DNA from: Macrostomum lignano
Lineage: Eukaryota
Direction: 5' to 3'
Assembly (NCBI GenBank): GCA_002269645.1
Contig: NIVC01000775.1
Location: 1 to 59,293 of the forward strand
Length of the DNA: 59,293 nucleotides
This document shows, in pieces, positions 29,914 to 59,293 of this stretch. Made by a program: the position numbers and the translations under genes. Numbering within the stretch: position 1 is the stretch's first letter; each line of letters starts with the position of its first letter. The notes under the pieces were generated by a model. It made no database searches and had not been told where the DNA came from. It saw only the letters and a program-made list of their open reading frames with translations.

Positions 29914-30582
29914 ATGAAGCTGCTGCTGCTGCTCACCGCCCTGGTGGCCACCGCCCTGGCCTGCGAGAACCCGCCCAGAGAGGGAGCCATCGGAGTGGCC
30001 GGTCTCGGCTACCACAACGGCACCTACCTCAAGCTGCTGGGAGGCATCGCCGGCTCCAAGGAGAAGAAGAAGGTGGCCGCCTACTTCAAGGTGAAGTCCC
30101 AGAACTACTCCGGACACCACTACACCATGTTCGACTTCGAGGCTGGCGTCGGCTACTACGCCTGGGGCACCAGCGCCGCCAATGCCCGGTGCGTGAAGAT
30201 CCCCGTGAGCCACGCCAAGTACTTCCTCACCCTGTGCCCCAAGATGTGGCCGAACAACCGCGTGGTGGCCCGCTCCACCGTCACCAGCCGCAAGGTGCCC
30301 ATCAGCGTGCACTGCGGCCGCATGACCAAGGGCGACCTCTCCATCAAGCTGGGCGGCGTCATCGATGACCGCTGCGTGCCGATCCTCATCAAGAAGAAGT
30401 ACAGGAAGAACGGCCAGTGCTCCGGCGGTATTCTCTTCTTCTTCGGCTTCCACCAGCCCAAGGACAAGTACTTCGAGCTGCCCGAGCTGTGCGCCAGCGC
30501 CAAGTTCTACAAGCCGAAGCGCGGAGAGGGCAGAAAGCCGTGCAGCGAGAAGACCAAGGGCCTGCCAACCCCCGACAGCTAA
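29914..30582 (+). CDS. EPDR: Secreted ependymin-related protein (EPDR family), single exon, 222 aa, very basic
   Basis: Strong GC3 codon bias. Signal peptide MKLLLLLTALVATALA. Ependymin-like pattern: C-x-x-P after the signal, MFDFEAGVGYY......RCVK, DDRCVPI, FF.GF....KYFELPELC. Eight Cys and N-glycosylation sequons NGT and NYS. The family call is from motif recognition, not a database search. Confidence 0.8.
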   Translation: MKLLLLLTALVATALACENPPREGAIGVAGLGYHNGTYLKLLGGIAGSKEKKKVAAYFKVKSQNYSGHHYTMFDFEAGVGYYAWGTSAANARCVKIPVSHAKYFLTLCPKMWPNNRVVARSTVTSRKVPISVHCGRMTKGDLSIKLGGVIDDRCVPILIKKKYRKNGQCSGGILFFFGFHQPKDKYFELPELCASAKFYKPKRGEGRKPCSEKTKGLPTPDS

Positions 30583-38890: not shown

Positions 38891-39155
38891 ATAATAAATA
38901 ATAATTGATTACACCTGCCCCAATGGCCAGATGTGCAACCGACAGCTCAGCCGCAGCCATTGCGCGGCGCATCTGATGGCTGCGTACGGCTGTTCAGTCC
39001 AAGGACTGGGGGGTCGCCACACACCCTCAATTACCCCAGCTAATGCTGGCACCCATTCTACAGCTGGGTAAACTGAAGCAATGCAGAGTTAAGTGGATCA
39101 AGAATCGAACCCCCGACCTTTCAGTTGTGAGTCAGACGCTCTAACCACTAGGCTA
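38891..39155 (-). mobile_element. SINE family 1 copy with internal deletion
   Basis: Matches the family but lacks ~30 bp between GAGTTAAGTG and GAGAATCGAACC. Confidence 0.88.
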
Positions 39156-39628
39156 GAACCCCTTAAGCTTAAGTAGTCTACTGAATATCGCTTGTCAGGC
39201 CTAGGCTTGCACTATAGTAGCATACAGGAAGCATATAAGCAAATTTTAGTCAGAAGTGCTGCTGTATTATTGGTGGCTGTGCATGTGCAGTCAGCATCGA
39301 AGTCTGATCTATTGAGCTCAAACTAAGCATTCTTAACAAACTTTGCAACTCGCAACAGAGCTGATTGTCTTCAACCGAAACTGAAGGCTGGTATATTTTT
39401 GCAGAGTTTGTACTGAGACAGAACAGGCGAATTGAGCAGCTGGACTGATGCCGATAAGCTACTGGCTTGAATGGGTGAGAAAAATGGTACGATGCAACTG
39501 CTTCTTCGCTGCACAGATTCGTTTGATTTGTACAATGAACATTTCAGACATCATCAAAACTGCACTTGAAAGAGTGAATTCGGCTTCCACTGTTTAATTT
39601 TGTTGTTTAGATAGAAAAGTTTGCCGCC

Positions 39629-42600
39629 TCAAACAAAGCTGGCTTCGGTGTAGGGGCTGAAGCTTGGGTAATGCTGCTGCTTCCCAGGAGACGCCTTGTT
39701 CCCGTCGACGCAAAGACCTGACGGTGGCGGCGGCGGCGGCGGCTGCGGCGGCTGTACTGGCAGAGCAACCTCTTCGCCGCAATCTCCGGCCTGTCCGGTC
39801 TGACCAGCGGCGGCACCTTTGATCTCGTAGTACATGTGCAGGCCGGTGTTGTACAGCTTGGCGCTGTCGCCGGTTCTGCGGCCCAATCGGACGCCTGTCG
39901 TGTCCAGCGGCTGGTAGTCCTGCACCTGCTTGCGATCGGCCTCCAAGCCGATGCTGCCAGCTGTAGATAGGCGGAATGACACATTTTATCGGTTTTATTC
40001 GTTTGTTTGGTAAGTCAAGCAGTAGTTATTATCGCATTTTAGCGTCCGAATTTGTTTGAATAGCTCAGTCATTGCAACCACTACCGTTGAGTATTAAATT
40101 AGACAGACTGAAATATGAGCTGAAAGCGTAGCTAATAGAAACGAACCAAACGCACCTGGGCCGGGGCTGGTGGTGCAGTACCGGGCATCTCGTCCGGTCG
40201 TGCGGTAGCCGTAGGCACCGGCTGATGTTGTCGGCTTCAGCTGAAGATTCGCATTGTAGGTGCAGAAGTCCTCCTGTGTGAGTCGCAGGGATGGTCTTCT
40301 GCTGTGCTCATTGTGACTATGTGCATAGTTCAGCCCTAGCATCAGTTTGCTGTGCTCATTGTGACTGTGTGTTTAGTGCAGCCCTAGCATCAGTTTGCTG
40401 TGCTCATTGTGACTGTGTGCATAGTTCAGCCCTAGCATCAGTTTGCTGTGCTCATTGTGACTGTGTGTTTAGTGCAGCCCTAGCATCAGTTTGCTGTGCT
40501 CATTGTGACTGTGTGTTTAGTGCAGCCCTAGCATCAGTTTGCTGTGCTCATTGTGACTGTGTGTGCATAGTTCAGCCCTAGCATCAGTTTGCTGTGCTCA
40601 TTGTGACTGTGTGTTTAGTGCAGCCCTAGCATCAGTTTGCTGTGCTCATTGTGACTGTGTGTGCATAGTGCAGCCCTAGCATCAGTTTGCTGTGCTCATT
40701 GTGACTGTGTGTGCATAGTTCAGCCCTAGCATCAGTTTGCTGTGCTCATTGTGACTGTGTGTTTAGTGCAGCCCTAGCATCAGTTTGCTGTGCTCATTGT
40801 GACTGTGTGTGCATAGTTCAGCCCTAGCATCAGTTTGCTGTGCTCATTGTGACTGTGTGTGCATAGTGCAGCCCTAGCATCAGTTTGCTGTGCTCATTGT
40901 GACTGTGTGTGCATAGTTCAGCCCTAGCATCAGTTTGCTGTGCTCATTGTGACTGTGTTTAGTGCAGCCCTAGCATCAGTTTGCTGTGCTCATTGTGACT
41001 GTGTTTAGTGCAGCCCTAGCATCAGTTTGCTGTGCTCATTGTGACTGTGTTTAGTGCAGCCCTAGCATCAGTTTGCTGTGCTCATTGTGACTGTGTTTAG
41101 TGCAGTCCTAGCATCAGTTTGCTGTGCTCATTTTGTGTGCATAGTGCATTCCTAGCATCAGTTTGCTGTGCTCATTGTGACTGTGTGCATAGTTCAGCCC
41201 TAGCATCAGTTTGCTGTGCTCATTGTGACTGTGTGTGCATAGTTCAGCCCTAGCATCAGTTTGCTGTGCTCATTGTGACTGTGTGTGCATAGTTCAGCCC
41301 TAGCATCAGTTTGCTGTGCTCATTGTGACTGTGCGTGCATAGTTCAGCCCTAGCATCAGTTTGCTGTGCTCATTGTGACTGTGTGTGCATAGTGCAGCCC
41401 TAGCATCAGTTTGCTGTGCTCATTGTGACTGTGTGTGCATAGTGCAGCCCTAGCATCAGTTTGCTGTGCTCATTGTGACTGTGTGCATAGTGCAGCCCTA
41501 GCATCAGTTTAAAGTAAATACCCAAATGCATGAATCTAAAATCAAGGCATAAAAAGTAGCGAATCGAAAATTCCCAGCCCCGGCTAAAGTCTCCCAGCCG
41601 GACACAGATAGCACGTCGGTCTCTCCTCTTTCCTTCTCATTCTCTTAGTTTCAGCTCACCCCTCCGGGCAAGGGACTCGAGGCCACCGGGGGCTGGGATG
41701 TGGAAATAGGGACCGATCAGGTCGGATGGGGCCCGGGGAGGCTGGGAGCGAACGAGAGAGGCGGGATAGATGGGAACGGCGAATGTTGAGACCTTGGCAA
41801 TCAGATTATGAGCCGGGCACTGTCCCAGGCCCCCTTCCCACTCTCCTCTTCAGTAGATTGCCTTCGCCCCTCTGGCTGTCTCTTTTGCTCTATTGCTGCT
41901 TTTGTAAGGCTTGAACTCCGCGGCTCCGGGCCCGGGCTTCATCATTCCGAAACAGCCTCTCCGCCCTCCTCACTTTTGCCGAGCTCGGGAAGCGATAAAG
42001 CGACGGAAGGATGAAGGGACTTAGGCAGAGAGGATGCACGTAGGGATATTTCGCGGAAATATAATCCCCAATATAATATTTTCCAGAAATAAACAAATTA
42101 TGTTTATTTATGTTTATTTTCCAATTTTTTCGGCCGGTGCATCCAAATTAGATAAATTATTTGGCTTCTGACTCGATGTTCAGATTCTTCCCCAATGAAT
42201 TATTGCTCAGAAAGTTTCAGAAGTTACTATTACGAGCTAGGGTAACCATGCACCGTCGCATTTCTCAATCCTCAGCGTGTCAAAGGGCGTCTCACCTCTC
42301 CGTTGAAGTCTTTGTACGCAGGCGGCATGTCATACGAGCCGGATATCATTTTCACGTCCGCGTGCTCAGCATCTGAAAGGCGATTATTGTAAACCACATA
42401 TTTATTAACGTTGGTTTCAGTTAGCAAATTCAATGAGTAGGGAGGCTACCAGAACACCCAGTTTCTGATTGACAGAAATACTAAACATTTTCGAATGGTC
42501 AAGGCACACCACTCTATCCACTGTTCTACCCTACCTACTGCACTACCTACCTACTGTTCTATCCACCCACTGCTCTACCTACCTATTGTTCTACCTACTC

Positions 42601-45600
42601 ACCGCTCTACCTACCCACTGCTCTACCCACCCACTGCTCTACCTACCCACTGCTCTACCCAACCACTGCTCTACCCACCCACTGCTCTACCTACCCACTA
42701 CTCTACCCACCCACTGCTCTACCTACCCACTGCTCTACCCACCCACTGCTCTATCTACCCACTGCTCTACCCACCCACTGCTCTATCTACCCACCGCTCT
42801 ACCCAACCACTGCTCTACCCACCCACTGTTCTACCTACCCACTGCTCTACCCTCCTACTAAATGCACTAGCAATACTGCTTGAGATGTAAGGGCCCAGCG
42901 CCTCCATGAAGCGCATGTAAACGCTCAACAACCAGCAATAAATCACTCCTTTATGCATAATGTCGTTCTAGATTTCTAATCCGACTTGGTGGAGCTTCCT
43001 ATAGTTTTCTTAACTTTAAGAGAGTTTGACTGATTCGGGAAAGCTTCTTAGCAAAAGTGTGAGAGGCTCAGGCTAGCCCTATCGCTAGCCGAGAAGCACT
43101 TTGCAGAAATCTGAGCGACACTAAAGAGCCGAACTCCTGTGTCTGCAGCTCCGACTCTCGGCCGCCTCCCCATCGCAGCACAACTCACTCAGTCGCTAAT
43201 GAGAGCTGACTCTCCCTGTCTCAGACTCCGCCAAGCCGCGCCCATCCCAGCGGCACTGCTGCCCCCCCCCTGGAGCCGCGGTTCGAGTCTCAAGCTTCAA
43301 TTCGGAACCCGCTATTTTTTCATCGTCTCGAAAGCGAAATGAGTTGCCGAAAAAGCAAATGAGAGCCGCACTTAGTTGAAAAAGGCGGGGAGATGCGCTC
43401 CGGAATCGATGCAAAATCAGCTCGAGAGCTGTCCATCAAAACAAACTCGCTACCGGCGGCTTGTCCTCAGCTTGCAGTGAATTTTTGTGAATCCGAATAA
43501 ATTCTGTCTGGCATTCGCATTCTCTCCACCCTCGTGAATCGTTGAGCTCAAGCAGCTGTCGCTGGGGATGCTGCATGGGAATCCACAGGTGGGGCACCCG
43601 GAAATCGAAGGCGATTCTTGCTCGGCAAGGCGTGAGGACGCACTGTGTGAATATGCTGGACTGGACCACCTTCGAGTCTAATCCTGATTACACATAATGC
43701 ATGTATACTTCATGAAGGTTTTCATTTAAGATTTGACCTAAAATCTATCAAATTGGTCAAGCCTCTCTTGATTGCACACCTGGACCTGTTGTCATAGCAA
43801 CAGCTGGTTGTCGGCTCTTTTTGATGTAGACGGAGCGCTTGCGCACAATCAGGCAGACAACGGTGACCGTGGCGATGCCCAGCACCAGGAACATCACCGC
43901 CAAGCACACTATCACTATCTCGTTGCCGAGGCCCTTCCCTCCGCTGTGCTCGCCGCTGTCGCCTCCGCCGCCAGGTGAGCCAGACTCCGTGCCAGAGCCT
44001 CCGCCGCGATAGGCAGCGTCGCGCCGGTCGACAATATGCGCCCGGTACCTGGCCTCCGCCGAGCAGTTGCGCGCCGGCCGCGGTCGCAGGCACGCAGCAC
44101 TAGGATGAAGTCCCGCGCCGGCTGGCTGTGCAGCGCCTTGTTGATGAGCACCAGGCCTGAGCGCCGGTCGACGCTAAACAGATCGTGCACCTCCGCCCTG
44201 TTAAGCAGCTCGTAGTCTACCAGTCTATTGTCGCCCTCGTCTGGGTCCTCCGCCAGCACTTGGCCGATGCTGATTCCAGGCTCCCGCTTCGTGACCTGCA
44301 GGGGGTCGGTGTTGGTGGCTTGGGTGAAGGCAAAGTTGCAGTGAAATTCTCTGCTCCAATTGGGTCGATTGGGCCAACCGACAGCTCAGCCCCAGCTATT
44401 GCGCGGCGCATCTGAAGGCTGCGTACGGCTGTAGAGTCCAAGGACTAGGGGGTCGCCGCACACACCCTTAACTACCCCAGCTAATGCTGACACCCATTTT
44501 ACAGCTGAGTGAACTGAAGCAATGCAGAGTCGTGTCTTGCCCGAGGACGCAACTTGTTCCGAGTAAGGTGCAGAGTCGAACATCCGACCTTTCAGTCGTA
44601 AGTCCAACGCTCAAACCACTAGGCTAAAACCCCTTCTACTTATACTTCATAATGTAGAAGCTGTGAACAAAGACGCTTACATTTCCGAGGTCTTACCTGA
44701 AACACCTCCGGATGATTGGGCGTCAACCGAAACACCGGCCTGTTGTCGTTTTCATCTTCCACGGTGACCGACACCAAGCAGGTGCCAGTCAGTGCGCCGT
44801 GCCCGGACCTCGGCTGGTCCTCGGCGAGCACGCGAAACGAATAGTGCGCCTGCCGCTCCCGGTCCAGCGGCATCGACGTCTTGATCTCGCCAGTGCGCCG
44901 GTCGACGCTGAAGGCTCGCCAGTCCGCGTCGCCGTCGCGGTCGTCCAGCCGGTAGGCGACCGCGCCGTTGCCCAGCTCCTTCTCGTCCTCGTCCTCGGCT
45001 TCGACGAAGCCGACCGTGCTGTCGGCTGGCCGATTCTCGCGCACCCGCAGTCGGTACTCTGCCTGCCGGCACATCGGCTGACGGTCGTTTGCGTCGACCA
45101 CGCGGACGGTGACCGTGGCAGTGGCGGTCAGTGGTGACTTGCCGCCGTCCGTAACCAGCACTCGCAGCGTGTAGCTGGCCTGCCGTTCTCGATCGAAGAC
45201 CACCAGCGGTCTGAGCTGCCCGGTGTCGGCGTTCACCTCGAAAAGTCTGGCAGCCTCCAGGTCGGTGGGATCGAGCGCGAACTGCAGCCGGCTGTTGTTG
45301 CCGATGTCCGCGTCGTGCACGTGATTGCGCACTCGGCCCTGCAGCGGGCGTCGCTCCGCGTCTTCCTCCAGAGCCTGAAGGAAAGTGCGGAACATCTCTT
45401 ACACATTGTTTCCTTCCACTGCCTACTAGTTTACATTTTAGTTCGCTAAATGAGCCGTCAAATCACTTGGCAACGCAAAGCATTACAAGCTACTCATACG
45501 GCAAATTCAGTTTAATGCACTTTTAGCCGGTAAGATTAGCCAACTGAGAAATTGATCAGAGTCGGACTGAAAGCGCCACAAAAGACGCTTTATTGATTTA

Positions 45601-48600
45601 AGAAATCCGCTACTCATTCGTCTAGTGTTTCGTGGAATTTTTGCGCAGAACCTGCCGTAGCTTATCGCTTCAGAGCAGTCTCCCTGGAGGTCAATCAATC
45701 TCTCACAGAGTAGCATAGCTACATTTATTAGCGATGCCCTTGAACTAACCCCAGAGCAAAAAGAGATCCCAAACCTGGAAGACGATTGGTCCATCCACCA
45801 CCGGTGGCGAGTCGTTGACATCCTCGATGGTCACACAGTAGCTGGCGCGGCCTTCCAGACGCTGCGAGTCCCGGCAGACGATGCCGAAGCAGGCCCGGGA
45901 AGAGACCTCGCGGTCGAACACCCGGTTTGTCACCAGGTCGAATAGCTTCATCTGAAAGAAGCATTGACGGGCGGCATACGAGGACTCAAGCAGTGAGGGC
46001 ACCAATGCCTTCTATGCGGAAATAATGATGTTGATCAGCCGAACTGCCAATGCAAAGGACTCAATTAGAAACTATGAAAACAGTCTCTGCCTGCCTAAAA
46101 TGGAGAGTAGGCCAGCAATAATTTCGGGTCAAGCGAGAGCTAGGAATCGTTTGATCCGATGGGCCTATTAGTTTGGTGGCTGGACTATCAAAGACATATA
46201 AAATGAGCCAGTCGTATTGAATTACATCACTCCCCATCTAATTAGAAACAATGCTCTGCAGTTGCTCCGCATGAGCTCATGCAGATGTGCATCATTGCTC
46301 GGTCTCTAATCTTTCACTTGCACCTCTGCACCAAGGATCTGGGCTGGGGGGGGGGTATCTCAACTATGCTCAAAGATCTGGCCTGTCATCTTTTCATTTT
46401 TTGGTCTCTAATTTTAATGCCGTCTTCTTTGGTAAGGCTTCTTATCATTCCTAGCCTCTCTGCAAAAGCCAATGACGCAATAGATATGGCTTCTCTTCAT
46501 TAGTAGTTGAAAGCAGATGTTGACATCGGTGCAACTGGCTTCATTAATCCGTGCCTAATAACTTCTATTTATATCGCTTTTTCTGATGGAGATACACATG
46601 AATTCATACCTACTAATGTGTCGAAAGTAAAGAAGAGTTATTTTTTCTACGGACCGATACACTTCAACGACTGCTCAATAGAACGTAGACGAAACGGTTG
46701 AACTCATGCCCATAACTTAGTAGCGAGATTCTTGTCTCCCCGGAGGCTTGACTTTGCTGTCCAATTATCGAGTAGCGCTTTGCAATTTTGCACCGGGCAA
46801 TTTAAATAATGATTGCAAGGCTGCTGTACGCACAGACCGTCAATTCGTGATTTGACGCGTGGGGAAAAACTGAGGAGAGCATGGCCGATTTTCGCAATCA
46901 GAGCACCGTTAAAAGGGCCTGTGCTATGCTCCATGATTTTTAGATTAAAGCCATTGCACCCTTTCTCTGCCTCCTTTTCTTTCTGCAAATCGATTCTTGG
47001 AAATGAGAATGAAGGGTCAGAGGGAGCACATGAAGCAATCTCATAATCCCCTCGGGAGACAACTCGGCATTGACGGCCCGTTGTCCCCATGGAGGAGAAG
47101 GGAATTCAGCTTTCAGAACAAAAAATATAGGGGCCTAAAAACGCAATTCTGCGTGCAAATAACTGCGGGCTGACAGATTAAAACAGAGAAAACGGTGCTG
47201 TTTTCAGAGATTCAAGCGATCCTTGGCTATCACAAGAATTAGCTCTGCCCGCACTGACTCAGCACGACTGTTTTCGCTTGATTGAGCGTTTATCATTTTT
47301 TCAAAGAAACGATTTCTTAATTAACTTCAGTTTTTCATGAGTAGAAAAAATTCCTCTTTATTTTCTGGTTTTTGCAATTGATTGATTTCAATAGCTATTC
47401 TTGTGGATTAGGCTGAGGTGCGAAACCTATTCAGCTATTCGGAATGATCTACCTGAGAATCCAAAGTTGAGAAAATCAGATAGCTTACTGCATTGGGTAC
47501 ATTGGAGCATCGCTAAAAAGAGCTCCTAAGAATGGAAGACTCCCAGGCATTTCAGCTTGGGAAAGCTCTGAAAGCTCACTGACTCTTCCTTACCGTGGAA
47601 TCGGTGGGTGCCGATGATCCGTAGTTGACACTGGAGGACAGCAGAATAAAAGGCACCTCTTGCCCGTGCTCGCTCAGGCCTCCAACCTGCAGGTGCGAAG
47701 GCGGCTGATTGTCACTCAGAACGGTCTCACACTGGACATGGTCGCCCGTGTCCAGGTCGCGAACAATGACCTCGGCAATCTTGCTTCTCAGCGCCAGGTT
47801 CTCTGGAATGCTTGGCGCTGATGGGCTGGCAGTGCATCCAGACGGCAGGAAGCAGGTCTCGATGGTGGGCGCTTCGTCGACTCTGTCCAGCACCGAAATG
47901 CTGACGGTGGCTGTGGCCGTTTTGCGGTACTCCTTGTCGCGAGCATTATCCCTGGCAATCACCTGCAAAAGCAAATCGAATTTTTGCTAATTTTAATTCA
48001 CAAACGTGTTTGTTCAGTTGGAATATTTTATTTCCTGAGAGTTGCACATACCTCAAACAGAAAGTACTTCTTGGTCATTCGATCATAGTCTAGCGGCTTG
48101 CGAATGATGATTCTGCCGTTTGCCAGCACGGCCAGGTACTGCCTGGCCACCTGCTGGTCCTCGCCGGCCGTGGCAGCGAAGTCGTAAACAACGGTGCCGT
48201 AGTCGCCGGAGTCCCTGTCCGTGGCTTGCAGCTGCAGCACTTCGCTGTTCACCACCTCGTTCTCGTAGATCGGCTTGGGAGGCGTGTAGAAGGCGCGGTC
48301 GAACTCGGGCGCGTGATCGTTCACGTCGATGATGATCACCTGCAGCATGATGGAACCAGTGAGCGGCGGGTTTCCCTCGTCGATTGCCACGAGGCTCATG
48401 TTGTACGAATCCTTCTCCTCTCGGTCGATAATTCGCGACGTCTCCAGTGACAGTCGGTTGTCCTCCGCCGTCTGCTTCAGCGAGAATGGCGCACCAAGGT
48501 TGTTCAGCTTATAGCGAACTCTGCCGTTCTTGCCCAGGTCTTTGTCTACCGCGTTGAGGATAAATTTGTTCTTGCCGGGCCCATCGCCGTCGAGGAATTC

Positions 48601-48718
48601 GACCCGAATGACATTGCCAGCCACTGGCCAGCTTGGTTGTTCATCGTTGATGTCATTGATGAGAACAAGCACGTCCACCTTCTGGCTCAGTGAGTCCTGG
48701 TAGATGGAGAACTCGTTC
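39629..48718 (-). CDS. PCDH: Protocadherin (at least six complete cadherin repeats plus the end of a seventh, TM helix, cytoplasmic tail); 5'-incomplete; one frameshift
   Basis: Exons 48052-48718, 47687(or 47657)-47962, 45775-45951, 44697-45374, 43780-44295, 43454-43677, 40156-40273, 39629-39960. Repeated DINDEQP/DVNDHAP/DANDRQP/DENDNRP, AxDxDxG and DRE motifs. TM IVIVCLAVMFLVLGIATVTVVCLIV. C-terminus EASFV. A 1-nt shortfall occurs near 44074. Confidence 0.92.
40299..41510. repeat. 46-50-bp minisatellite (~25 copies)
   Basis: Unit GCTGTGCTCATTGTGACT(GT)n(GCA/T)TAGT(T/G)CAGCCCTAGCATCAGTTT. Length varies through the internal GT run. Confidence 0.97.
42505..42860. repeat. 16-bp minisatellite (CCACTGCTCTACC(T/C)AC)n
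   Basis: About 20 tandem imperfect copies in a protocadherin intron. Confidence 0.92.
44350..44626 (-). mobile_element. SINE family 1 copy in the intron within cadherin repeat 7
   Basis: Matches the family consensus and lies between exons 44697-45374 and 43780-44295. Confidence 0.88.
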
Positions 48719-48838
48719 CTGCAGCAATGGATCCACCGTATGGTCAGAAACTACTCAAGTCTCTCAGAATCAAATAAGAAGCAATATCTGTCTCATATTC
48801 ACAGTAATATTTTGGGTCTATCTAGGAACTTTCTAGGT

Positions 48839-49247: not shown

Positions 49248-49724
49248 CTCTAGGAATATACTTCGATTGACTGTTGCAATTCACTTCAAATTTCATATCA
49301 CACTACTTTTCGTATGGCTTGGTTCAACAATATCTACATGTAGCTATATCAAGGCAAAAAAAATAGTGCAAACCTACTTATTTTAGCTGAAACAATAGCA
49401 AATATTGCCGAAATGGGTTCGGGTTATCCCAATCCAGCTGAACAAATCTCTCTGTGGACTGCCATGGGATCTGGTGGGTTCGGTGTATTGGGAAGAATAA
49501 TATTGCCAATATTCCTATGATCGAGACACGCAAAAGCAGATGAACTATCAGCGAAAGAGAGCTCTATGACAATGTTGGGCTGTGCTACCAGCCTTTCAGC
49601 ATATTACAAGTATCCACCTGTTCTGCCCATGCAACAGGGGGTGAATGCGGGTTGGTCTCTCTCTCTCTCTTACCCTGCTGTTTGCCTCTCTCAGTGACCA
49701 CACAGAGGCTTTCACTGGGGTGTA

Positions 49725-49725
<1 letters not shown>

Positions 49726-49758
<33 letters not shown>
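49726..49758. repeat. (GT)n microsatellite
   Basis: About 16 GT units. Confidence 0.97.
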
Positions 49759-49762
<4 letters not shown>

Positions 49763-49763
49763 G

Positions 49764-50950
49764 CACGGGGCATTTGTTGGGCCATACGCGTACAACGGGA
49801 CCCGCACTGTTGGGCCAAAAAAAATGTTGGGACTGTCCCATCAAGTCCGTCCAACACTTCCAAAAAAGTTACAATAGCAGCTCAAAAAAATACTCTATGG
49901 ATTCAGCTCGACAGCCTCTTTTTGATGGTGCAACTCATTTTTAATAATTTTACTTGCTGTGTCAATAAATAAGCAAAAACTGGCGTCCCAATAAGTAAAA
50001 ATGATACAAAATTCGACCAAATCACTATTGGGACACTGAAATGGCTAATCTGCTCCCGCATATTTTTATTGGTTTTTTCTCATATTTTTACTAATAGTAG
50101 ATTTCAAGCGCATTCATTTGCTGCAGTCTTTGTTTTAAGACGTAAATACATAGCATACATTAAAATACATACAAAGCAAAGCATAGCAAAACACTTTTAA
50201 GGGTATTTTATTGTCAAAGGATGGTTCTGGATGGAGATAAACCTAAAGAAATGACAAGGGCTTAAATTTACTTCTGACTGTGATGGGCATCAGTACTCTA
50301 CACGAACTAAATTGTTAGGACAGTGTTGCAGTGTTGAATACAACAGCCCACTCTTGTTAGGACTCATGCTATTGACTGCTGCGCGCATTCGATATTCTAT
50401 AAATTGTTGGAACTGTGTGCTAGAGTGTCGTTTACAAAAGCCCACTCATATTAGGACTTACCCCATACATGTTAGGACTAAGCCCTACCCCCCTGTGTAC
50501 ATGGCTCCAATTTACCAGAGTCCCCTTGCTAGTTAGGTGTACATTTATTTTGGTCTATTATTGACGCCACCCCGCAAACGTACGGTAAACAAAATTGGCA
50601 TGTACTCGCCATGCTGAAATCAATGGTCAACTCTGCCTCTGCCATGGCACCCGAGTCACCATGGTATGGAAAGAACAGCATGGAATGGCACAGCGATAAA
50701 CATGTAAGTGGTATTAAAAAACTTTGTCGGAAACAAGAAGCATTTATATTTAAATGCTATAAAAAATACTGCTCCTGCTAAGCAGTACCTACCTTTCCTT
50801 CAGGTATATCACCTTTGATCAACTGCCATGTGGCGCAATTGCCAAAGGATCCGTCGACTTTAACCGGTAAGCTGTAAAAGCTTTGAGTAAAACTTGACAT
50901 TTCGTCTGAATCCATTGACATTCAATAGCCTACGTGTCCAACCACAAAAA
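49764..50950 (+). mobile_element. Putative left end of a DNA transposon with subterminal motif array
   Basis: Begins CACGGGG immediately after the GT microsatellite. Ten copies of T(G/A)TT(G/A)G(G/A)(A/C)C occur in 49775-50478 in both orientations. The other end is not in the window. Confidence 0.45.
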
Positions 50951-53900
50951 TTATAAGTTTTGTACTTTTAACTCTCAGATCGGGTCTTAGCAGATTTCTA
51001 TAGCTATGCATGCAAGGGCCCCTCAGAAGAGATGCTTAAACACTGCAGTGCATTTTTCCTAGCAATTATTGGGACACGAAGTGTTGGGCCACTGTGTGTG
51101 TGTCTAGTTTTTTCCGCATTTGTTAAGTCACCTAAAGAACTCAATTAATAAAGGGCTCCAGAACAAATTGATGGGCAAACGGATGACACACTGCACAGAG
51201 ACTTGTTGGGACATATTAAAAACAGCTTATTTTAGAATGGGTACACTTTACTAAAGTAGAATGCTCCTACAGAAAGCTGCAAGCAAACTAGCATCTTCTG
51301 GAGCTGACATGCAGAGAAGAATGATTTTGTCGTCCTTAAAATCACTAAATCGATATGCGAAATCGATCTTTTGCTAATCCCACCACAGGTTCCAATGAAA
51401 AGAAGAAACGAAACCCATTGACTAAATTGGGACTCAATCGATGCCGACTGCAACTGAGCAGCTTCGACTGCAGCTAATAGACTTGCTAGATGCCAGAATG
51501 ACAGCATCAAAGTTAAGCAGAAGCTTCAATGAAAGGTTAGTTCACTCATTCGTTTTCGTGTCTAGAGCAGCTCAACTAGCAGATTCTACGAGAGTAATGC
51601 TTAGATGCCAGCAAATTGCTTCACAGCATCTAAAGTCTTAAGCAGAAGCTTCAGAGATGAAAGGTTAGTTCATGCTGTGGCTCGCATTCAGATTTTCGTG
51701 TCTAGAAGCGTTATTAACTTTTTGTAGCTTTTAATACTACTGCAGATCAGAATGGGTCTTAGCAGAATTCTATCAGCTATGCATGCAGAGGGCCCCTCAA
51801 GCCCCTCAGAAGAGATGCTTAAACACTGCAGTGCATTTTTCCTAGCAATTATTGGGACACGAAGTGTTGGGCCACTGTGTGTGTGTCTAGTTTTTTCCGC
51901 ATTTGTTAAGTCACCTAAAGAACTCAATTAATAAAGGGCTCCAGAACAAATTGATGGGCAAACGGATGACACACTGCACAGAGACTTGTTGGGACATATT
52001 AAAAACAGCTTATTTTAGAATGGGTACACTTTACTAAAGTAGAATGCTCCTACAGAAAGCTGCAAGCAAACTAGCATCTTCTGGAGCTGACATGCAGAGA
52101 AGAATGATTTTGTCGTCCTTGAAATCACTAAATCGATATGCGAAATCGATCTTTTGCTAATCCCACCACAGGTTCCAGTGAAAAGAAGAAACGAAACCCA
52201 TTGACTAAATTGGCAGTCGACTCAATCGATGCCGACTGCAACTGACCTGTCAGCTTCGAACTCAGGAGAGCAGCTAATAGACTACGAGAGTAATGCTAGA
52301 TGCCAGAATGCTTCACAGCATCAAAGTCTTAAGCAGAAGCTTCAATGAAAGGTTAGTTCATGCTGTGGCTGCATTCGTTTTCGTGTCTAGAAGCGTTATA
52401 ACTTTTTGTACTTTTAACTCTCAGATCGGGTCTTAGCAGATTCTATAGCTATGCATGCAAGGGCCCCTCAGAAGAGATGCTTAAACACTGCAGTGCATTT
52501 TTCCTAGCAATTATTGGGACACGAAGTGTTGGGCCACTGTGTGTGTGTCTAGTTTTTTCCGCATTTGTTAAGTCACCTAAAGAACTCAATTAATAAAGGG
52601 CTCCAGAACAAATTGATGGGCAAACGGATGACACACTGCACAGAGACTTGTTGGGACAGATTAAAAACAGCTTATTTTAGAATGGGTACACTTTACTAAA
52701 GTAGAATGCTCCTACAGAAAGCTGCAAGCAAACTAGCATCTTCTGGAGCTGACATGCAGAGAAGAATGATTTTGTCGTCCTTGAAATCACTAAATCGATA
52801 TGCGAAATCGATCTTTTGCTAATCCCACCACAGGTTCCATGAAAAGAAGAAACGAAACCCATTGACTAAATTGGCAGTCGACTCAATCGATGCCGACTGC
52901 AACTGACCTGTCAGCTTCGAACTCAGGAGAGCAGCTAATAGACTACGAGAGTAATGCTAGATGCCAGAATGCTTCACAGCATCAAAGTCTTAAGCAGAAG
53001 CTTCAATGAAAGGTTAGTTCATGCTGTGGCTGCATTCGTTTTCGTGTCTAGAAGCGTTATAACTTTTTGTACTTTTAACTCTCAGATCGGGTCTTAGCAG
53101 ATTCTATAGCTATGCATGCAAGGGCCCCTCAGAAGAGATGCTTAAACACTGCAGTGCATTTTTCCTAGCAATTATTGGGACACGAAGTGTTGGGCCACTG
53201 TGTGTGTGTCTAGTTTTTTCCGCATTTGTTAAGTCACCTAAAGAACTCAATTAATAAAGGGCTCCAGAACAAATTGATGGGCAAACGGATGACACACTGC
53301 ACAGAGACTTGTTGGGACATATTAAAAACAGCTTATTTTAGAATGGGTACACTTTACTAAAGTAGAATGCTCCTACAGAAAGCTGCAAGCAAACTAGCAT
53401 CTTCTGGAGCTGACATGCAGAGAAGAATGATTTTGTCGTCCTTGAAATCACTAAACAGATATGCGAAATCGATCTTTTGCTAATCCCACCACAGGTTCCA
53501 GTGAAAAGAAGAAACGAAACCCATTGACTAAATTGGCAGTCGACTCAATCGATGCCGACTGCAACTGACCTGTCAGCTTCGAACTCAGGAGAGCAGCTAA
53601 TAGACTACGAGAGTAATGCTAGATGCCAGAATGCTTCACAGCATCAAAGTCTTAAGCAGAAGCTTCAATGAAAGGTTAGTTCATGCTGTGGCTGCATTCG
53701 TTTTCGTGTCTAGAAGCGTTATAACTTTTTGTACTTTTAACTCTCAGATCGGGTCTTAGCAGATTCTATAGCTATGCATGCAAGGGCCCCTCAGAAGAGA
53801 TGCTTAAACACTGCAGTGCATTTTTCCTAGCAATTATTGGGACACGAAGTGTTGGGCCACTGTGTGTGTGTCTAGTTTTTTCCGCATTTGTTAAGTCACC

Positions 53901-56900
53901 TAAAGAACTCAATTAATAAAGGGCTCCAGAACAAATTGATGGGCAAACGGATGACACACTGCACAGAGACTTGTTGGGACAGATTAAAAACAGCTTATTT
54001 TAGAATGGGTACACTTTACTAAAGTAGAATGCTCCTACAGAAAGCTGCAAGCAAACTAGCATCTTCTGGAGCTGACATGCAGAGAAGAATGATTTTGTCG
54101 TCCTTGAAATCACTAAATCGATATGCGAAATCGATCTTTTGCTAATCCCACCACAGGTTCCAATGAAAAGAAGAAACGAAACCCATTGACTAAATTGGCA
54201 GTCGACTCAATCGATGCCGACTGCAACTGACCTGTCAGCTTCGAACTCAGGAGAGCAGCTAATAGACTACGAGAGTAATGCTAGATGCCAGAATGCTTCA
54301 CAGCATCAAAGTCTTAAGCAGAAGCTTCAATGAAAGGTTAGTTCATGCTGTGGCTGCATTCGTTTTCGTGTCTAGAAGCGTTATAACTTTTTGTACTTTT
54401 AACTCTCAGATCGGGTCTTAGCAGATTCTATAGCTATGCATGCAAGGGCCCCTCAGAGAGATGCTTAAACACTGCAGTGCATTTTTCCTAGCAATTATTG
54501 GGACACGAAGTGTTGGGCCACTGTGTGTGTGTCTAGTTTTTTCCGCATTTGTTAAGTCACCTAAAGAACTCAATTAATAAAGGGCTCCAGAACAAATTGA
54601 TGGGCAAACGGATGACACACTGCACAGAGACTTGTTGGGACAGATTAAAAACAGCTTATTTTAGAATGGGTACACTTTACTAAAGTAGAATGCTCCTACA
54701 GAAAGCTGCAAGCAAACTAGCATCTTCTGGAGCTGACATGCAGAGAAGAATGATTTTGTCGTCCTTGAAATCACTAAATCGATATGCGAAATCGATCTTT
54801 TGCTAATCCCACCACAGGTTCCAGTGAAAAGAAGAAACGAAACCCATTGACTAAATTGGCAGTCGACTCAATCGATGCCGACTGCAACTGACCTGTCAGC
54901 TTCGAACTCAGGAGAGCAGCTAATAGACTACGAGAGTAATGCTAGATGCCAGAATGCTTCACAGCATCAAAGTCTTAAGCAGAAGCTTCAATGAAAGGTT
55001 AGTTCATGCTGTGGCTGCATTCGTTTTCGTGTCTAGAAGCGTTATAACTTTTTGTACTTTTAACTCTCAGATCGGGTCTTAGCAGATTCTATAGCTATGC
55101 ATGCAAGGGCCCCTCAGAGAGATGCTTAAACACTGCAGTGCATTTTTCCTAGCAATTATTGGGACACGAAGTGTTGGGCCACTGTGTGTGTGTCTAGTTT
55201 TTTCCGCATTTGTTAAGTCACCTAAAGAACTCAATTAATAAAGGGCTCCAGAACAAATTGATGGGCAAACGGATGACACACTGCACAGAGACTTGTTGGG
55301 ACAGATTAAAAACAGCTTATTTTAGAATGGGTACACTTTACTAAAGTAGAATGCTCCTACAGAAAGCTGCAAGCAAACTAGCATCTTCTGGAGCTGACAT
55401 GCAGAGAAGAATGATTTTGTCGTCCTTGAAATCACTAAACAGATATGCGAAATCGATCTTTTGCTAATCCCACCACAGGTTCCAGTGAAAAGAAGAAACG
55501 AAACCCATTGACTAAATTGGCAGTCGACTCAATCGATGCCGACTGCAACTGACCTGTCAGCTTCGAACTCAGGAGAGCAGCTAATAGACTACGAGAGTAA
55601 TGCTAGATGCCAGAATGCTTCACAGCATCAAAGTCTTAAGCAGAAGCTTCAATGAAAGGTTAGTTCATGCTGTGGCTGCATTCGTTTTCGTGTCTAGAAG
55701 CGTTATAACTTTTTGTACTTTTAACTCTCAGATCGGGTCTTAGCAGATTCTATAGCTATGCATGCAAGGGCCCCTCAGAGAGATGCTTAAACACTGCAGT
55801 GCATTTTTCCTAGCAATTATTGGGACACGAAGTGTTGGGCCACTGTGTGTGTGTCTAGTTTTTTCCGCATTTGTTAAGTCACCTAAAGAACTCAATTAAT
55901 AAAGGGCTCCAGAACAAATTGATGGGCAAACGGATGACACACTGCACAGAGACTTGTTGGGACAGATTAAAAACAGCTTATTTTAGAATGGGTACACTTT
56001 ACTAAAGTAGAATGCTCCTACAGAAAGCTGCAAGCAAACTAGCATCTTCTGAGCTGACATGCAGAGAAGAATGATTTTGTCGTCCTTGAAATCACTAAAT
56101 CGATATGCGAAATCGATCTTTTGCTAATCCCACCACAGGTTCCAGTGAAAAGAAGAAACGAAACCCATTGACTAAATTGGCAGTCGACTCAATCGATGCC
56201 GACTGCAACTGACCTGTCAGCTTCGAACTCAGGAGAGCAGCTAATAGACTACGAGAGTAATGCTAGATGCCAGAATGCTTCACAGCATCAAAGTCTTAAG
56301 CAGAAGCTTCAATGAAAGGTTAGTTCATGCTGTGGCTGCATTCGTTTTCGTGTCTAGAAGCGTTATAACTTTTTGTACTTTTAACTCTCAGATCGGGTCT
56401 TAGCAGATTCTATAGCTATGCATGCAAGGGCCCCTCAGAGGAGATGCTTAAACACTGCAGTGCATTTTTCCTAGCAATTATTGGGACACGAAGTGTTGGG
56501 CCACTGTGTGTGTGTCTAGTTTTTTCCGCATTTGTTAAGTCACCTAAAGAACTCAATTAATAAAGGGCTCCAGAACAAATTGATGGGCAAACGGATGACA
56601 CACTGCACAGAGACTTGTTGGGACAGATTAAAAACAGCTTATTTTAGAATGGGTACACTTTACTAAAGTAGAATGCTCCTACAGAAAGCTGCAAGCAAAC
56701 TAGCATCTTCTGGAGCTGACATGCAGAGAAGAATGATTTTGTCGTCCTTGAAATCACTAAACAGATATGCGAAATCGATCTTTTGCTAATCCCACCACAG
56801 GTTCCAGTGAAAAGAAGAAACGAAACCCATTGACTAAATTGGCAGTCGACTCAATCGATGCCGACTGCAACTGACCTGTCAGCTTCGAACTCAGGAGAGC

Positions 56901-59293
56901 AGCTAATAGACTACGAGAGTAATGCTAGATGCCAGAATGCTTCACAGCATCAAAGTCTTAAGCAGAAGCTTCAATGAAAGGTTAGTTCATGCTGTGGCTG
57001 CATTCGTTTTCGTGTCTAGAAGCGTTATAACTTTTTGTACTTTTAACTCTCAGATCGGGTCTTAGCAGATTCTATAGCTATGCATGCAAGGGCCCCTCAG
57101 AGAGATGCTTAAACACTGCAGTGCATTTTTCCTAGCAATTATTGGGACACGAAGTGTTGGGCCACTGTGTGTGTGTCTAGTTTTTTCCGCATTTGTTAAG
57201 TCACCTAAAGAACTCAATTAATAAAGGGCTCCAGAACAAATTGATGGGCAAACGGATGACACACTGCACAGAGACTTGTTGGGACATATTAAAAACAGCT
57301 TATTTTAGAATGGGTACACTTTACTAAAGTAGAATGCTCCTACAGAAAGCTGCAAGCAAACTAGCATCTTCTGGAGCTGACATGCAGAGAAGAATGATTT
57401 TGTCGTCCTTGAAATCACTAAATCAGATATGCGAAATCGATCTTTTGCTAATCCCACCACAGGTTCCAGTGAAAAGAAGAAACGAAACCCATTGACTAAA
57501 TTGGCAGTCGACTCAATCGATGCCGACTGCAACTGACCTGTCAGCTTCGAACTCAGGAGAGCAGCTAATAGTCTACGAGAGTAATGCTAGATGCCAGAAT
57601 GCTTCACAGCATCAAAGTCTTAAGCAGAAGCTTCAATGAAAGGTTAGTTCATGCTGTGGCTGCATTCGTTTTCGTGTCTAGAAGCGTTATAACTTTTTGT
57701 ACTTTTAACTCTCAGATCGGGTCTTAGCAGATTCTATAGCTATGCATGCAAGGGCCCCTCAGAGGAGATGCTTAAACACTGCAGTGCATTTTTCCTAGCA
57801 ATTATTGGGACACGAAGTGTTGGGCCACTGTGTGTGTGTCTAGTTTTTTCCGCATTTGTTAAGTCACCTAAAGAACTCAATTAATAAAGGGCTCCAGAAC
57901 AAATTGATGGGCAAACGGATGACACACTGCACAGAGACTTGTTGGGACATATTAAAAACAGCTTATTTTAGAATGGGTACACTTTACTAAAGTAGAATGC
58001 TCCTACAGAAAGCTGCAAGCAAACTAGCATCTTCTGGAGCTGACATGCAGAGAAGAATGATTTTGTCGTCCTTGAAATCACTAAATCGATATGCGAAATC
58101 GATCTTTTGCTAATCCCACCACAGGTTCCAGTGAAAAGAAGAAACGAAACCCATTGACTAAATTGGCAGTCGACTCAATCGATGCCGACTGCAACTGACC
58201 TGTCAGCTTCGAACTCAGGAGAGCAGCTAATAGTCTACGAGAGTAATGCTAGATGCCAGAATGCTTCACAGCATCAAAGTCTTAAGCAGAAGCTTCAATG
58301 AAAGGTTAGTTCATGCTGTGGCTGCATTCGTTTTCGTGTCTAGAAGCGTTATAACTTTTTGTACTTTTAACTCTCAGATCGGGTCTTAGCAGATTCTATA
58401 GCTATGCATGCAAGGGCCCCTCAGAGGAGATGCTTAAACACTGCAGTGCATTTTTCCTAGCAATTATTGGGACACGAAGTGTTGGGCCACTGTGTGTGTG
58501 TCTAGTTTTTTCCGCATTTGTTAAGTCACCTAAAGAACTCAATTAATAAAGGGCTCCAGAACAAATTGATGGGCAAACGGATGACACACTGCACAGAGAC
58601 TTGTTGGGACATATTAAAAACAGCTTATTTTAGAATGGGTACACTTTACTAAAGTAGAATGCTCCTACAGAAAGCTGCAAGCAAACTAGCATCTTCTGGA
58701 GCTGACATGCAGAGAAGAATGATTTTGTCGTCCTTGAAATCACTAAAAGATATGCGAAATCGATCTTTTGCTAATCCCACCACAGGTTCCAGTGAAAAGA
58801 AGAAACGAAACCCATTGACTAAATTGGCAGTCGACTCAATCGATGCCGACTGCAACGACCTGTCAGCTTCGAACTCAGGAGAGCAGCTAATAGTCTACGA
58901 GAGTAATGCTAGATGCCAGAATGCTTCACAGCATCAAAGTCTTAAGCAGAAGCTTCAATGAAAGGTTAGTTCATGCTGTGGCTGCATTCGTTTTCGTGTC
59001 TAGAAGCGTTATAACTTTTTGTACTTTTAACTCTCAGATCGGGTCTTAGCAGATTCTATAGCTATGCATGCAAGGGCCCCTCAGAAGAGATGCTTAAACA
59101 CTGCAGTGCATTTTTCCTAGCAATTATTGGGACACGAAGTGTTGGGCCACTGTGTGTGTGTCTAGTTTTTTCCGCATTTGTTAAGTCACCTAAAGAACTC
59201 AATTAATAAAGGGCTCCAGAACAAATTGATGGGCAAACGGATGACACACTGCACAGAGACTTGTTGGGACAGATTAAAAACAGCTTATTTTAG
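50950..59293. repeat. Large tandem array, ~661-bp unit, ~12.5 copies, runs off the window end
   Basis: Anchor GGGCCCCTC at 51016, 51790, 52461, 53122, 53784, 54446, 55107, 55768, 56428, 57090, 57752, 58414 and 59074. Spacing is 660-662 bp after the first two units. Units are near-identical. Confidence 0.98.

Follow-up and report, generated by a model that had tools for sequence, protein, structure and literature searches.

Satellite-like arrays inside mobile elements have a precedent in Tetris (PMC4079207), a foldback DNA transposon from Drosophila virilis that seeded a satellite from its internal tandem repeats, and more broadly in transposons with tandem-repeat cores. Residence in microsatellites is likewise known for the MuTAnT Mutator-like elements in (TA)n of Medicago (PMC4486113) and for the microsatellite-associated MITEs of pineapple (PMC8449440), non-autonomous elements with terminal inverted repeats (TIRs) that have the same microsatellite on both sides and leave it uninterrupted at empty sites. 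Cryptons encode a tyrosine recombinase, lack TIRs and have been proposed to recombine a terminal motif with an identical target, so that the motif then lies on both sides (PMC3212892, PMC9977147). Macrosatellites and intronic tandem repeats, finally, combine long units and high identity with variable copy number and an intronic position.

We analyzed a stretch of 59,293 bp from Macrostomum lignano, hereafter the window, which is the entire contig NIVC01000775.1 (assembly Mlig_3_7, GCA_002269645.1) and stops within an array of 661-bp units. Reading structure, insertion site, history, transcription and mobilization jointly, we consider it probable that this array forms the tandemly repeated interior of a non-autonomous M. 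lignano mobile element residing in (TG)n. The element is a new family, and the kind of system is already known. It resembles Tetris in being non-autonomous and satellite-like, with inverted termini and an internal array of varying copy number, but its unit is long (661 bp) and, according to annotation, transcribed and spliced, and it has short imperfect TIRs instead of long foldback arms; the comparison is one of structure, not of superfamily, and a free-standing long derived satellite is so far known for Tetris alone in this pair. With MuTAnT and the pineapple MITEs it shares TIRs, non-autonomy and a microsatellite that flanks both sides and is uninterrupted at empty sites, whereas its target is (TG)n, its host an animal and its length 9-14 kb owing to the array; a 9-bp target-site duplication or a long Mutator-type TIR is not demonstrable. 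The counterpart of the Crypton motif would be (TG)n, although the element has TIRs, and neither a recombinase nor a circular form was seen. Unlike macrosatellites, which it matches in the features listed above, the array is bounded by transposon arms and present whole at several unrelated loci. Our literature search returned no description of M. lignano satellites.

The 661-bp array and its arms

The features that define the array and the part of the element to its left are as follows (a slash marks a unit or splice boundary throughout).

50950-59293, plus strand: tandem array of the 661-bp unit, recognized by anchor spacing and unit junctions
52396-53056, plus strand: representative unit, from junction GAAGCG/TTATAA to the next junction; each unit holds two exact copies of TGTTRGGMC and one looser variant
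51437-51803, plus strand: aberrant stretch over the junction of units 1 and 2, with 124 additional bp, a partly duplicated donor module and many small indels
49759-50949, plus strand: left arm of the mobile element, 1.19 kb, without a long ORF
49762-49796, plus strand: left terminal inverted repeat, core CGCACGGGGCATTTGTTGG
49775-50478, plus strand: subterminal cluster of TGTTRGGMC in direct orientation, a motif that the TIR contains too, with looser variants at 50028, 50407 and 50451

The array covers 8344 bp, or ~12.4 units of 660-663 bp that are >99% identical among units 3-12, which upholds the initial annotation's description of a homogeneous 661-bp macrosatellite with at least 12 near-identical units. 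A 26-nt anchor recurs 13 times between 51034 and 59092, at a spacing of 783 nt for the first interval and 660-663 nt thereafter, and the unit junction GAAGCG/TTATAA is found at 50950 (the array start), 51711, 52396, 53057 and onward to 59009. These are head-to-tail copies of high identity, that is, a tandem repeat. Units 2-12 each depart from the consensus in 1-7 alignment columns, and because the variants are common to subsets of units, this variation is unlikely to be sequencing noise. The aberrant stretch at 51437-51803, absent from the first units of all three sister arrays described below, reflects local rearrangement or else poor polishing of the assembly.

Sister copies were found on three other contigs (L008, L009 and L010), with arrays of 18.8, 17.8 and 10.9 units. 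The left array boundary falls at unit position 633 in all of them, as in the window: a 29-nt match carries it directly in L008 and L009, and in L010 the left arm continues into the array without a break. The right boundary, at unit position 549, is common to the three. Homology between copies stops on the left exactly at (GT)n (window 49727/49759 versus L010 7503/7534) and on the right ~520 bp beyond the array, at (TG)n, and the flanks outside (TG)n differ among all four copies. The repeat thus occurs in unrelated contexts (n = 4 loci) with sharp common boundaries, and the array is the cargo core of a composite repeat made of a 1.19-kb left arm, n units of 661 bp and a 0.52-kb right arm. Two left ends (window, L010) and three right ends (L008, L009, L010) were observed, and the complete copy in L010 measures 8919 bp. 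In the window the copy consists of left arm and array; its right arm falls outside the window, and its own right junction is absent from the assembly. The left arm is 97% identical to L010 7534-8724 (2.6% substitutions), with unrelated sequence upstream of the microsatellite. Its L010 counterpart carries no annotated CDS, and it has no Pfam or protein match. No second copy of 49400-52480 was found in the remaining window or in seven further loci (L001-L007).

Units differ by 0.5-1.1% within arrays versus 0.9-1.6% between arrays, and the variants lie in blocks of neighboring units. The units therefore show concerted evolution, being more alike within an array than between arrays. Neighboring units would have been homogenized, most plausibly by unequal exchange or replication slippage, and copy number would have drifted between 11 and 19 units after the array arose. 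Arm differences between copies (1.7-2.6%) exceed those of the units (0.9-1.6%), a point that weighs against our reading.

The initial annotation had seen here a satellite being born by amplification of an exon-intron cassette. This is not what the copies suggest: the array boundaries are identical at four places (unit positions 633 and 549), at 11-19 units. Since all four copies share these boundaries, the array predates the insertion into the intron described next. Its placing of the array inside a transposon, by contrast, was correct, as the arms, TIR, sister copies and empty sites attest.

A protocadherin intron and its empty sites

Two further features concern the host locus.

39607-48723, minus strand: protocadherin-like gene (Mlig026595 family), from the residue-173 exon to the stop, host of the insertion; placed by tblastn of the proteins P0002 and P0140, Pfam Cadherin and splice junctions, with its 5' exons past the contig end
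49727-49758, no strand: (GT)16 microsatellite found by TRF, target site and left flank of the element; homology to the loci L011 and L012 runs to 49757 and stops

Relative to the annotated protein, the window covers the counterpart of residue 173 and everything after it, and the signal-peptide/EC1 exon is missing, in agreement with the earlier remark that the signal peptide and most of the first repeat lie elsewhere. A first cadherin search had given nothing at E <= 1e-40, and no gene record was found for P0001 or P0002. In the other two subgenome copies, L011 and L012, a distance of 3.7-5.3 kb separates the exon corresponding to window 48723 from the signal-peptide/EC1 exon upstream of it, and the insertion point falls ~1 kb from the former. 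These exon positions support the proposal that the array sits in an intron of the protocadherin gene, in antisense orientation. The element landed in the protocadherin intron that directly follows the signal-peptide/EC1 exon, and did so in only one of three subgenome copies.

Three subgenomes have been described in M. lignano, and large indels were reported as the main difference between them (PMC10733133). The three copies of our host locus differ by ~1.2% substitutions and so match these subgenomes. L011 and L012 are empty sites: each has a single, uninterrupted (TG)n, is colinear with the window up to 49757, reads ..GTAAAG(TG)nCGCGCTTGCTGCG.. and has no match to either arm or to the unit. 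The window locus is thus a clean, datable example of a large subgenome-specific insertion (>9.5 kb). All five element junctions abut (TG)n (left in the window and L010; right in L008, L009 and L010), and with the single (TG)n of both empty sites this indicates microsatellite targeting, albeit in a small sample.

Beyond the contig end, the predicted order is more units, the last of them ending at unit position 549, then the 0.52-kb right arm, (TG)n and CGCGCTTGCTGCGATAAAATAG. We considered L008 and L009 as continuations of the window locus and rejected both, as their right flanks are unlike the empty-site sequence and lack a cadherin exon. The host intron would have grown from 3.7-5.3 kb to >13 kb, and its pre-mRNA may meet antisense transcription from the element.

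Could these patterns reflect segmental duplication or an assembly artefact instead of a mobile element? The assembly is known for redundancy and for errors in repeats (PMC5730564, PMC10733133), the array is cut by the contig end, and 51437-51803 looks poorly polished. However, period and boundaries are alike on four independent contigs that each have array-specific blocks of variants, homology breaks sharply at (TG)n between unrelated flanks, and two subgenome copies offer clean empty sites. We therefore hold this explanation to be highly unlikely.

Termini and the route of mobilization

The left TIR pairs with the reverse complement of the right end, CGCACCGGGCACTTGTTGG, in L008, L009 and L010. 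The TIR is imperfect (~19-35 bp, with 16 of 19 core positions paired) and starts 4-6 nt inside the microsatellite boundary; its score was reached by none of 2000 shuffles of the terminal 40 or 60 nt, and in ~330 kb of scanned M. lignano DNA the TIR motif was confined to element ends. TGTTRGGMC, a motif derived from the TIR, recurs through the left arm and within each unit. All 32 exact occurrences in the 59-kb window fall in the element and on the plus strand, versus 1.36 expected, and the terminal motif load comes to 2-3 copies per unit and 30-60 per element.

Judged by its TIRs, unrelated contexts and empty sites, the element appears to be of the non-autonomous class II TIR transposon type, an assignment that stops short of superfamily. 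The hallmarks of Helitrons (5' TC, 3' CTRR, insertion between A and T) were absent: the ends read TTTGCGCAC.. and ..GGTGCGTGATTG and lie within (TG)n. Movement was probably by cut-and-paste, with a transposase acting in trans that would recognize the TIR and TGTTRGGMC. In the DNA examined, neither a transposase nor an autonomous partner was found, and what the arms and unit encode is not recognizable.

As (TG)n borders both flanks, a target-site duplication is unreadable. The (TG)n on the window's left flank is as long as the entire (TG)n of the empty sites; an element bringing its own (TG)n, or recombining through (TG)n, therefore fits at least as well as a staggered cut. The same element might accordingly integrate as a circle, through crossover of its own (TG)n with genomic (TG)n, either as a Crypton-like element served by a tyrosine recombinase in trans or by reinsertion of eccDNA, in which case the TIR halves would be inverted binding sites flanking the crossover tract. 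The full-length left tract is what would be expected if the second tract arrived with the element, (TG)n is directly oriented on both sides of every copy, and tandem arrays form circles readily. Cryptons also provide a documented model in which a terminal motif recombines with an identical target (PMC9977147), but those described use short specific motifs and lack TIRs. No recombinase gene is known for the element, and its inverted termini and subterminal motif repeats resemble transposase binding sites. The observations would fit both routes, and we consider the circular one the less probable.

A retroelement origin is harder to credit, and we think it unlikely. Here the element would be a non-autonomous retroelement moved by a Penelope-like or non-LTR element with a microsatellite bias, and the right (TG)n would be its 3' tail. 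Penelope-like elements are indeed strongly biased to (CA)n or (TA)n, where target-site duplications become unreadable (bioRxiv 10.1101/2021.04.23.441226; PMC9977147), and the transcribed strand, as given by the annotation of sister copies, would end in (TG)n. Against this, both left ends (n = 2) are full length and identical, without 5' truncation, all genomic copies retain introns, and the termini are inverted rather than direct: a terminal comparison found no direct similarity between the element ends and no pseudo-LTRs. Nor did an Rfam search find a hammerhead or any other family. The hallmarks of Penelope-like and non-LTR elements (direct terminal repeats, 5' truncation at the two left ends, a hammerhead) are thus absent, and we retain the TIR transposon as the preferred reading.

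Splicing and coding capacity of the units

Two intervals of a representative junction and unit are needed for what follows.

52352-52424, plus strand: 73-nt junction 'intron' of the initial annotation, from the donor to CTCTCAG/ATCGGG (n = 11 junctions from units 2/3)
52172-52351, plus strand: representative 180-nt exon, acceptor CCACCACAG/GTTCC and donor AATGAAAG/GTTAGT, as defined by sister-array annotation

The initial annotation proposed that consecutive units are joined by splicing through a ~70-nt chimeric intron, which measures 73 nt. All 12 units carry the donor-like sequence AATGAAAG/GTTAGT, and the acceptor-like CTCTCAG/ATCGGG follows exactly 73 nt past it at each junction from units 2/3 on (n = 11); in unit 1 the donor module has its nearest downstream acceptor of this type 889 nt away. 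GenBank CDS models of the sister arrays (BOX15_Mlig001640g35, Mlig025015g3/g4; PAA45935.1, PAA47379-81) pair this donor with an internal acceptor and join one unit to the next in cis. Two of the CDS models examined (P0129, P0139) are reproduced exactly by ATGAAAG/GT..(482-485 nt)..AG/GTTCC in L008, L009 and L010, and every one of the 12 window units has sites of the annotated type, which delimit exons of 179-180 nt and introns of 480-482 nt. The NIVC contigs belong to the Mlig_3_7 assembly, for which gene annotation was RNA-seq based (PMC5730564). The proposal was therefore right about the donor and about the joining of consecutive units, both seen in sister-array models, and not supported on the intron: the annotated one measures 480-485 nt and ends at the acceptor CCACCACAG/GTTCC, and the 73-nt interval is used by no annotated model found. 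By the annotation of sister copies, the plus strand of the element would be transcribed, with one exon of ~180 nt per unit and splicing from the donor to the internal acceptor 480-485 nt downstream.

The two 'exon-like blocks' annotated upstream (~50611-50705 and ~50805-50867) fall in the left arm. A chimeric intron derived from two related introns would call for homology between the terminal part of the left arm and that of the unit; we rejected this, as the similarity was not significant, with 342 of 1000 shuffles attaining its score.

The cassette was further described as phase-preserving and, in a coding version of that model, the satellite would have been born in place from an exon-intron cassette with a rebuilt 73-nt intron. 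Both splice-site consensus sequences, and the 73-nt distance between them, do exist, and the unit donor leaves 2 codon bases, the same phase as the upstream block (..TTTAACCG/GTAAGC). The stretch between the 73-nt acceptor and the donor, however, is 587, 588 or 589 nt long, a multiple of 3 (588 nt) in only 3 of 10 full units, and holds 5-11 stops in the entering frame. Unit 1, the sole unit adjoining the unique upstream block, is frameshifted by an extra T and meets a stop after 7 codons. Stops interrupt all frames, exon lengths are 587-589 nt or 179-181 nt, and ORFs of the unit in six frames reach at most 68 aa. Short ORFs are frameshifted between arrays (26 aa in the window versus 60 aa in L009 and L010). 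Neither arms nor unit have a Pfam match. Among 5.8 billion proteins, the joined unit ORFs matched one M. lignano gene model only, and the homologues are gene models of the repeat itself; a 78-aa ORF belongs to a cluster limited to two known members, and one scan of metagenome contigs with a 31-nt unit segment gave 0 matches. Together with the identical array boundaries at three other loci and the different acceptor of annotated splicing, these results already contradict the model on both origin and coding, and we accord it almost no likelihood.

Arrays with a good donor in each unit also recall spliced-leader (SL) RNA genes, which often lie in tandem arrays of 0.5-1 kb, and each unit could in principle supply the 5' exon for trans-splicing. 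An old gene model, P0001, does link the unit donor to an unrelated EGF-like gene. Yet the known 35-nt M. lignano leader (PMC8629364) has no match in the window even with 3 mismatches allowed, no Rfam SL match rises above chance, annotated models join units in cis, and the arrays are parts of a bounded element, all of which leaves this the least probable of the explanations considered.

Under the transposon reading, the product has only short, unconserved ORFs, and we therefore read it as a non-coding transposon transcript. More speculatively, we can picture a mobile and self-contained unit of non-coding transcription, perhaps moving as a circle via (TG)n, in which the array multiplies both a periodic spliced exon and the terminal binding motif of the element. 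The array would then be functional rather than passive cargo, for example by recruiting or titrating a recombinase or by serving as a source of piRNA or antisense RNA on host genes such as the protocadherin; we regard this as improbable. The ~60-aa 'hypothetical proteins' in GenBank (Mlig001640, Mlig025015, Mlig001723 and Mlig004721 groups) are artefacts of the 661-bp repeat. By default, Tandem Repeats Finder probably caps the period at 500 bp. The genome paper ran it with default settings (PMC5730564), through which the 661-bp repeat probably escaped masking.

These observations suggest that a satellite has spread through the genome as mobile-element cargo, with a microsatellite as its landing site. 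We also considered whether the 'V' variant of P0001 might place the EGF-like gene just past the contig end and rejected this, as V is the common state in all sister arrays and the EGF gene appears in no flank examined. The P0001 model suggests that neighboring genes may obtain donor sites or promoters from the element.

The array and its sister copies

The tandem array of near-identical units described in the initial annotation is real, and the start proposed for it, 50950, matches our junction-to-junction measurement. From 51034 to 59092 a 26-nt anchor recurs, 13 times in all, with a first spacing of 783 nt and later spacings of 660-663 nt, and the unit junction GAAGCG/TTATAA falls at 50950, 51711 and 52396 and then every 660-663 nt to 59009. 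The NIVC contigs belong to the Mlig_3_7 assembly of M. lignano line DV1 (PMC5730564); since the window is a whole contig, the array reaches the contig end and its length of about 12.4 units is a lower bound. Units (42% G+C) 2-12 differ from their consensus in 1-7 alignment columns each, and several variants are common to subsets of units, a pattern expected of real copies and not of sequencing noise. The sole badly diverged stretch, without counterpart in the first units of three sister arrays, reflects either a genuine rearrangement or incomplete polishing of the PacBio assembly:

51437-51803: aberrant array stretch with 124 bp excess, numerous small indels and an additional, diverged donor module

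The sister arrays emerged from protein searches. Searched without a profile against 1.8 billion representative proteins, P0001, a gene model of the older ML2 assembly, retrieved two more small proteins of unit sequence. Unit-derived GenBank proteins of Mlig_3_7 are PAA45935.1 (BOX15_Mlig001640g35) and PAA47379-81 (BOX15_Mlig025015g3/g4), whose loci led to three further contigs with the same 661-bp repeat:

L008, NIVC01005182.1: 18.8 units
L009, NIVC01003857.1: 17.8 units
L010, NIVC01004473.1: 10.9 units

All three arrays end on the right at unit position 549, and their opening 29 nt (unit position 633 onward) are identical to each other and to the window at 50950. Units diverge by 0.5-1.1% inside arrays versus 0.9-1.6% between them, and variants occur in blocks of neighbouring units; both patterns fit unequal exchange inside arrays after the copies separated. 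Divergence between the arms of different copies, at 1.7-2.6%, is higher than that of units.

Element boundaries, empty sites and mobility

The array is part of a bounded mobile element. On the left, L010 matches the window at 97% from (GT)n at 49727 through 50949 and is unrelated upstream of the microsatellite; on the right, L008, L009 and L010 have in common ~520 bp after the array, followed by (TG)n and then complete divergence. One copy is complete:

L010 copy, 8,919 bp: left arm (1,191 bp), array, right arm (522 bp)

The ends are inverted (left CGCACGGGGCATATGTTGG.. versus the reverse complement of right ..CCAACAAGTGCCCGGTGCG), a score reached by 0 of 2000 shuffles. Across ~330 kb of M. 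lignano DNA, this terminal inverted repeat (TIR) motif was found only at the five element ends, each adjoining (TG)n. Part of it, TGTTRGGMC, recurs as direct repeats throughout the units and in the left arm; of 32 exact matches in the window, none falls outside the element (1.4 expected).

Empty sites were reached through the cluster of a cadherin match, by way of the annotated protocadherin-like proteins PAA60238.1 (Mlig026595g2) and PAA66439.1 (Mlig026595g1). The corresponding loci, L011 and L012, follow the window colinearly between ~29.7 kb and 49757 and are unrelated afterwards, and neither arms nor unit had a match in either locus. Their sequence across the insertion point is ..GGGGTGTAAAG(TG)nCGCGCTTGCTGCGATAAAATAG.., that of the window ..GGGGTGTAAAG(TG)nTTTGCGCACGGGGC... 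The three host copies are ~1.2% substitutions apart, which fits the three subgenomes of DV1, whose differences are reportedly for the most part large indels (PMC10733133). Given the empty sites and this divergence, the element entered the window copy after the subgenomes separated.

Inverted termini and subterminal motif repeats point to movement by a transposase acting in trans. The direct (TG)n tracts on both sides of the element, the left one in the window being as long as the entire empty-site tract, are equally compatible with a circle that integrates by way of its own (TG)n, whether Crypton-like (PMC9977147) or by reinsertion of extrachromosomal DNA. A microsatellite-biased retroelement, Penelope-like or LINE-dependent, is less likely, since the element ends carry no direct terminal repeats, no hammerhead was found and the two left ends examined show no 5' truncation. 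The element has no Helitron ends.

Internal tandem arrays acting as a satellite liken the element to Tetris (PMC4079207), and microsatellite targeting by a TIR element to MuTAnT (PMC4486113) and pineapple MITEs (PMC8449440). The M. lignano element unites both features in a flatworm, with periodic splicing in addition. Our literature search found no description of it, and we regard it as a new family within an already known kind of element.

Splice-like sites and transcription

The donor-like AATGAAAG/GTTAGT is present in 12 of 12 window units, and the acceptor-like CTCTCAG/ATCGGG follows exactly 73 nt later at 11 junctions (units 2/3 onward); both are similar to genuine splice sites in the cadherin gene next to the array. 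The initial annotation had taken these sites to bound an exon-intron cassette spliced in phase from unit to unit. The sequence does not support that reading: the acceptor-to-donor stretch varies from unit to unit (587, 588 or 589 nt), holds 5-11 stops in the entering frame and, in unit 1, loses the frame after 7 codons. Together with the short unit ORFs (at most 68 aa) and their lack of any Pfam match, this rules out the unit as a coding cassette. All unit ORFs combined as one query against 5.8 billion proteins gave a single match, the M. lignano gene model P0001, in which residues 1-44 are repeat-derived.

The Mlig_3_7 GenBank annotation was built from RNA-seq (StringTie/TACO plus de novo transcriptome), with ORFs called by TransDecoder (PMC5730564), and according to its models of the sister copies the element is transcribed and spliced. 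In L008, L009 and L010, 60-aa models correspond exactly to a two-exon CDS, ATGAAAG/GTTAGT .. 482-485 nt .. CCACCACAG/GTTCC. The proposed donor is thus supported by the models of the sister arrays, and its partner is an internal acceptor in the next unit, not the one 73 nt away; the older ML2 model P0128 has the same junction. Splicing as annotated makes each unit contribute a single exon of 179-181 nt, and both sites are intact in 12/12 window units. A concatemer of the window exons joined in this way stays open for at most 64 codons. The unit ORF is not conserved between arrays: the window equivalent of the 60-aa ORF stops after 26 codons, and 60 codons are reached in L009 and L010 by a 1-nt difference from the window and in L008 by another. 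The default maximum period of Tandem Repeats Finder is 500 bp, a limit that would account for unit-derived 'genes' getting past the repeat filter. The assembly paper used this program with default settings (PMC5730564).

Two neighbourhoods outside the window were also noted. P0001 (UniRef A0A1I8FFY1) begins with 44 unit-derived residues and continues, by way of the unit donor, into a gene of EGF-like type, which suggests either a host gene that receives its 5' exon from another element copy or an error of the gene predictor. At L010 16452-17204, ~750 bp separate the element's right end from a downstream alpha-mannosidase (GH38) gene of like orientation, where chimeric or read-through transcripts could arise.

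Host gene and other repeats

The exon matching window 48723-48043 is preceded, 5.3 kb upstream in L011 and 3.7 kb upstream in L012, by the exon that encodes the signal peptide and the first cadherin repeat, and (TG)n lies ~1 kb from the former. These positions bear out the initial placement of the array in a protocadherin intron, as well as the reported absence of that upstream exon from the window. The element is antisense to the gene.

39607-48723 (-): protocadherin copy without a gene on record
40300-41510: 50-bp minisatellite within a 3' intron of that gene, 25 copies with 93% matches

Both other subgenome copies have a gene record; its absence here is likely due to 5' exons cut off by the contig end. 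Identity to the annotated protein is only 86% over residues 861-979, and the last exons in the window gave no match above 85%. The minisatellite spans ~1.2 kb in the window, ~1.6 kb in L011 and ~1.0 kb in L012.

Other features of the window were as follows:

29914-30582 (+): 222-aa ORF with a signal-peptide-like start, and ~1.1-1.3 kb of sequence surrounding it
4580-4888, 18102-18416, 23479-23738 (-), 34303-34551 (-), 38898-39095: short interspersed repeat of ~300 bp, at least 5 copies, 83-91% alike
12540-12983: 45-bp minisatellite, 9.9 copies
13529-14442: 33-bp minisatellite, 28.5 copies, underlying a repetitive minus-strand ORF of 330 aa

The 222-aa ORF has no Pfam domain. Its identical product occurs on at least 10 Mlig_3_7 contigs beside varying neighbours (MFS transporter, Piwi/Argonaute, ADH, FERM), and the ORF with its surroundings looks like a dispersed, possibly mobile, gene-bearing block. 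The ~300-bp repeat, also found in the subgenome copies, is SINE- or MITE-like.
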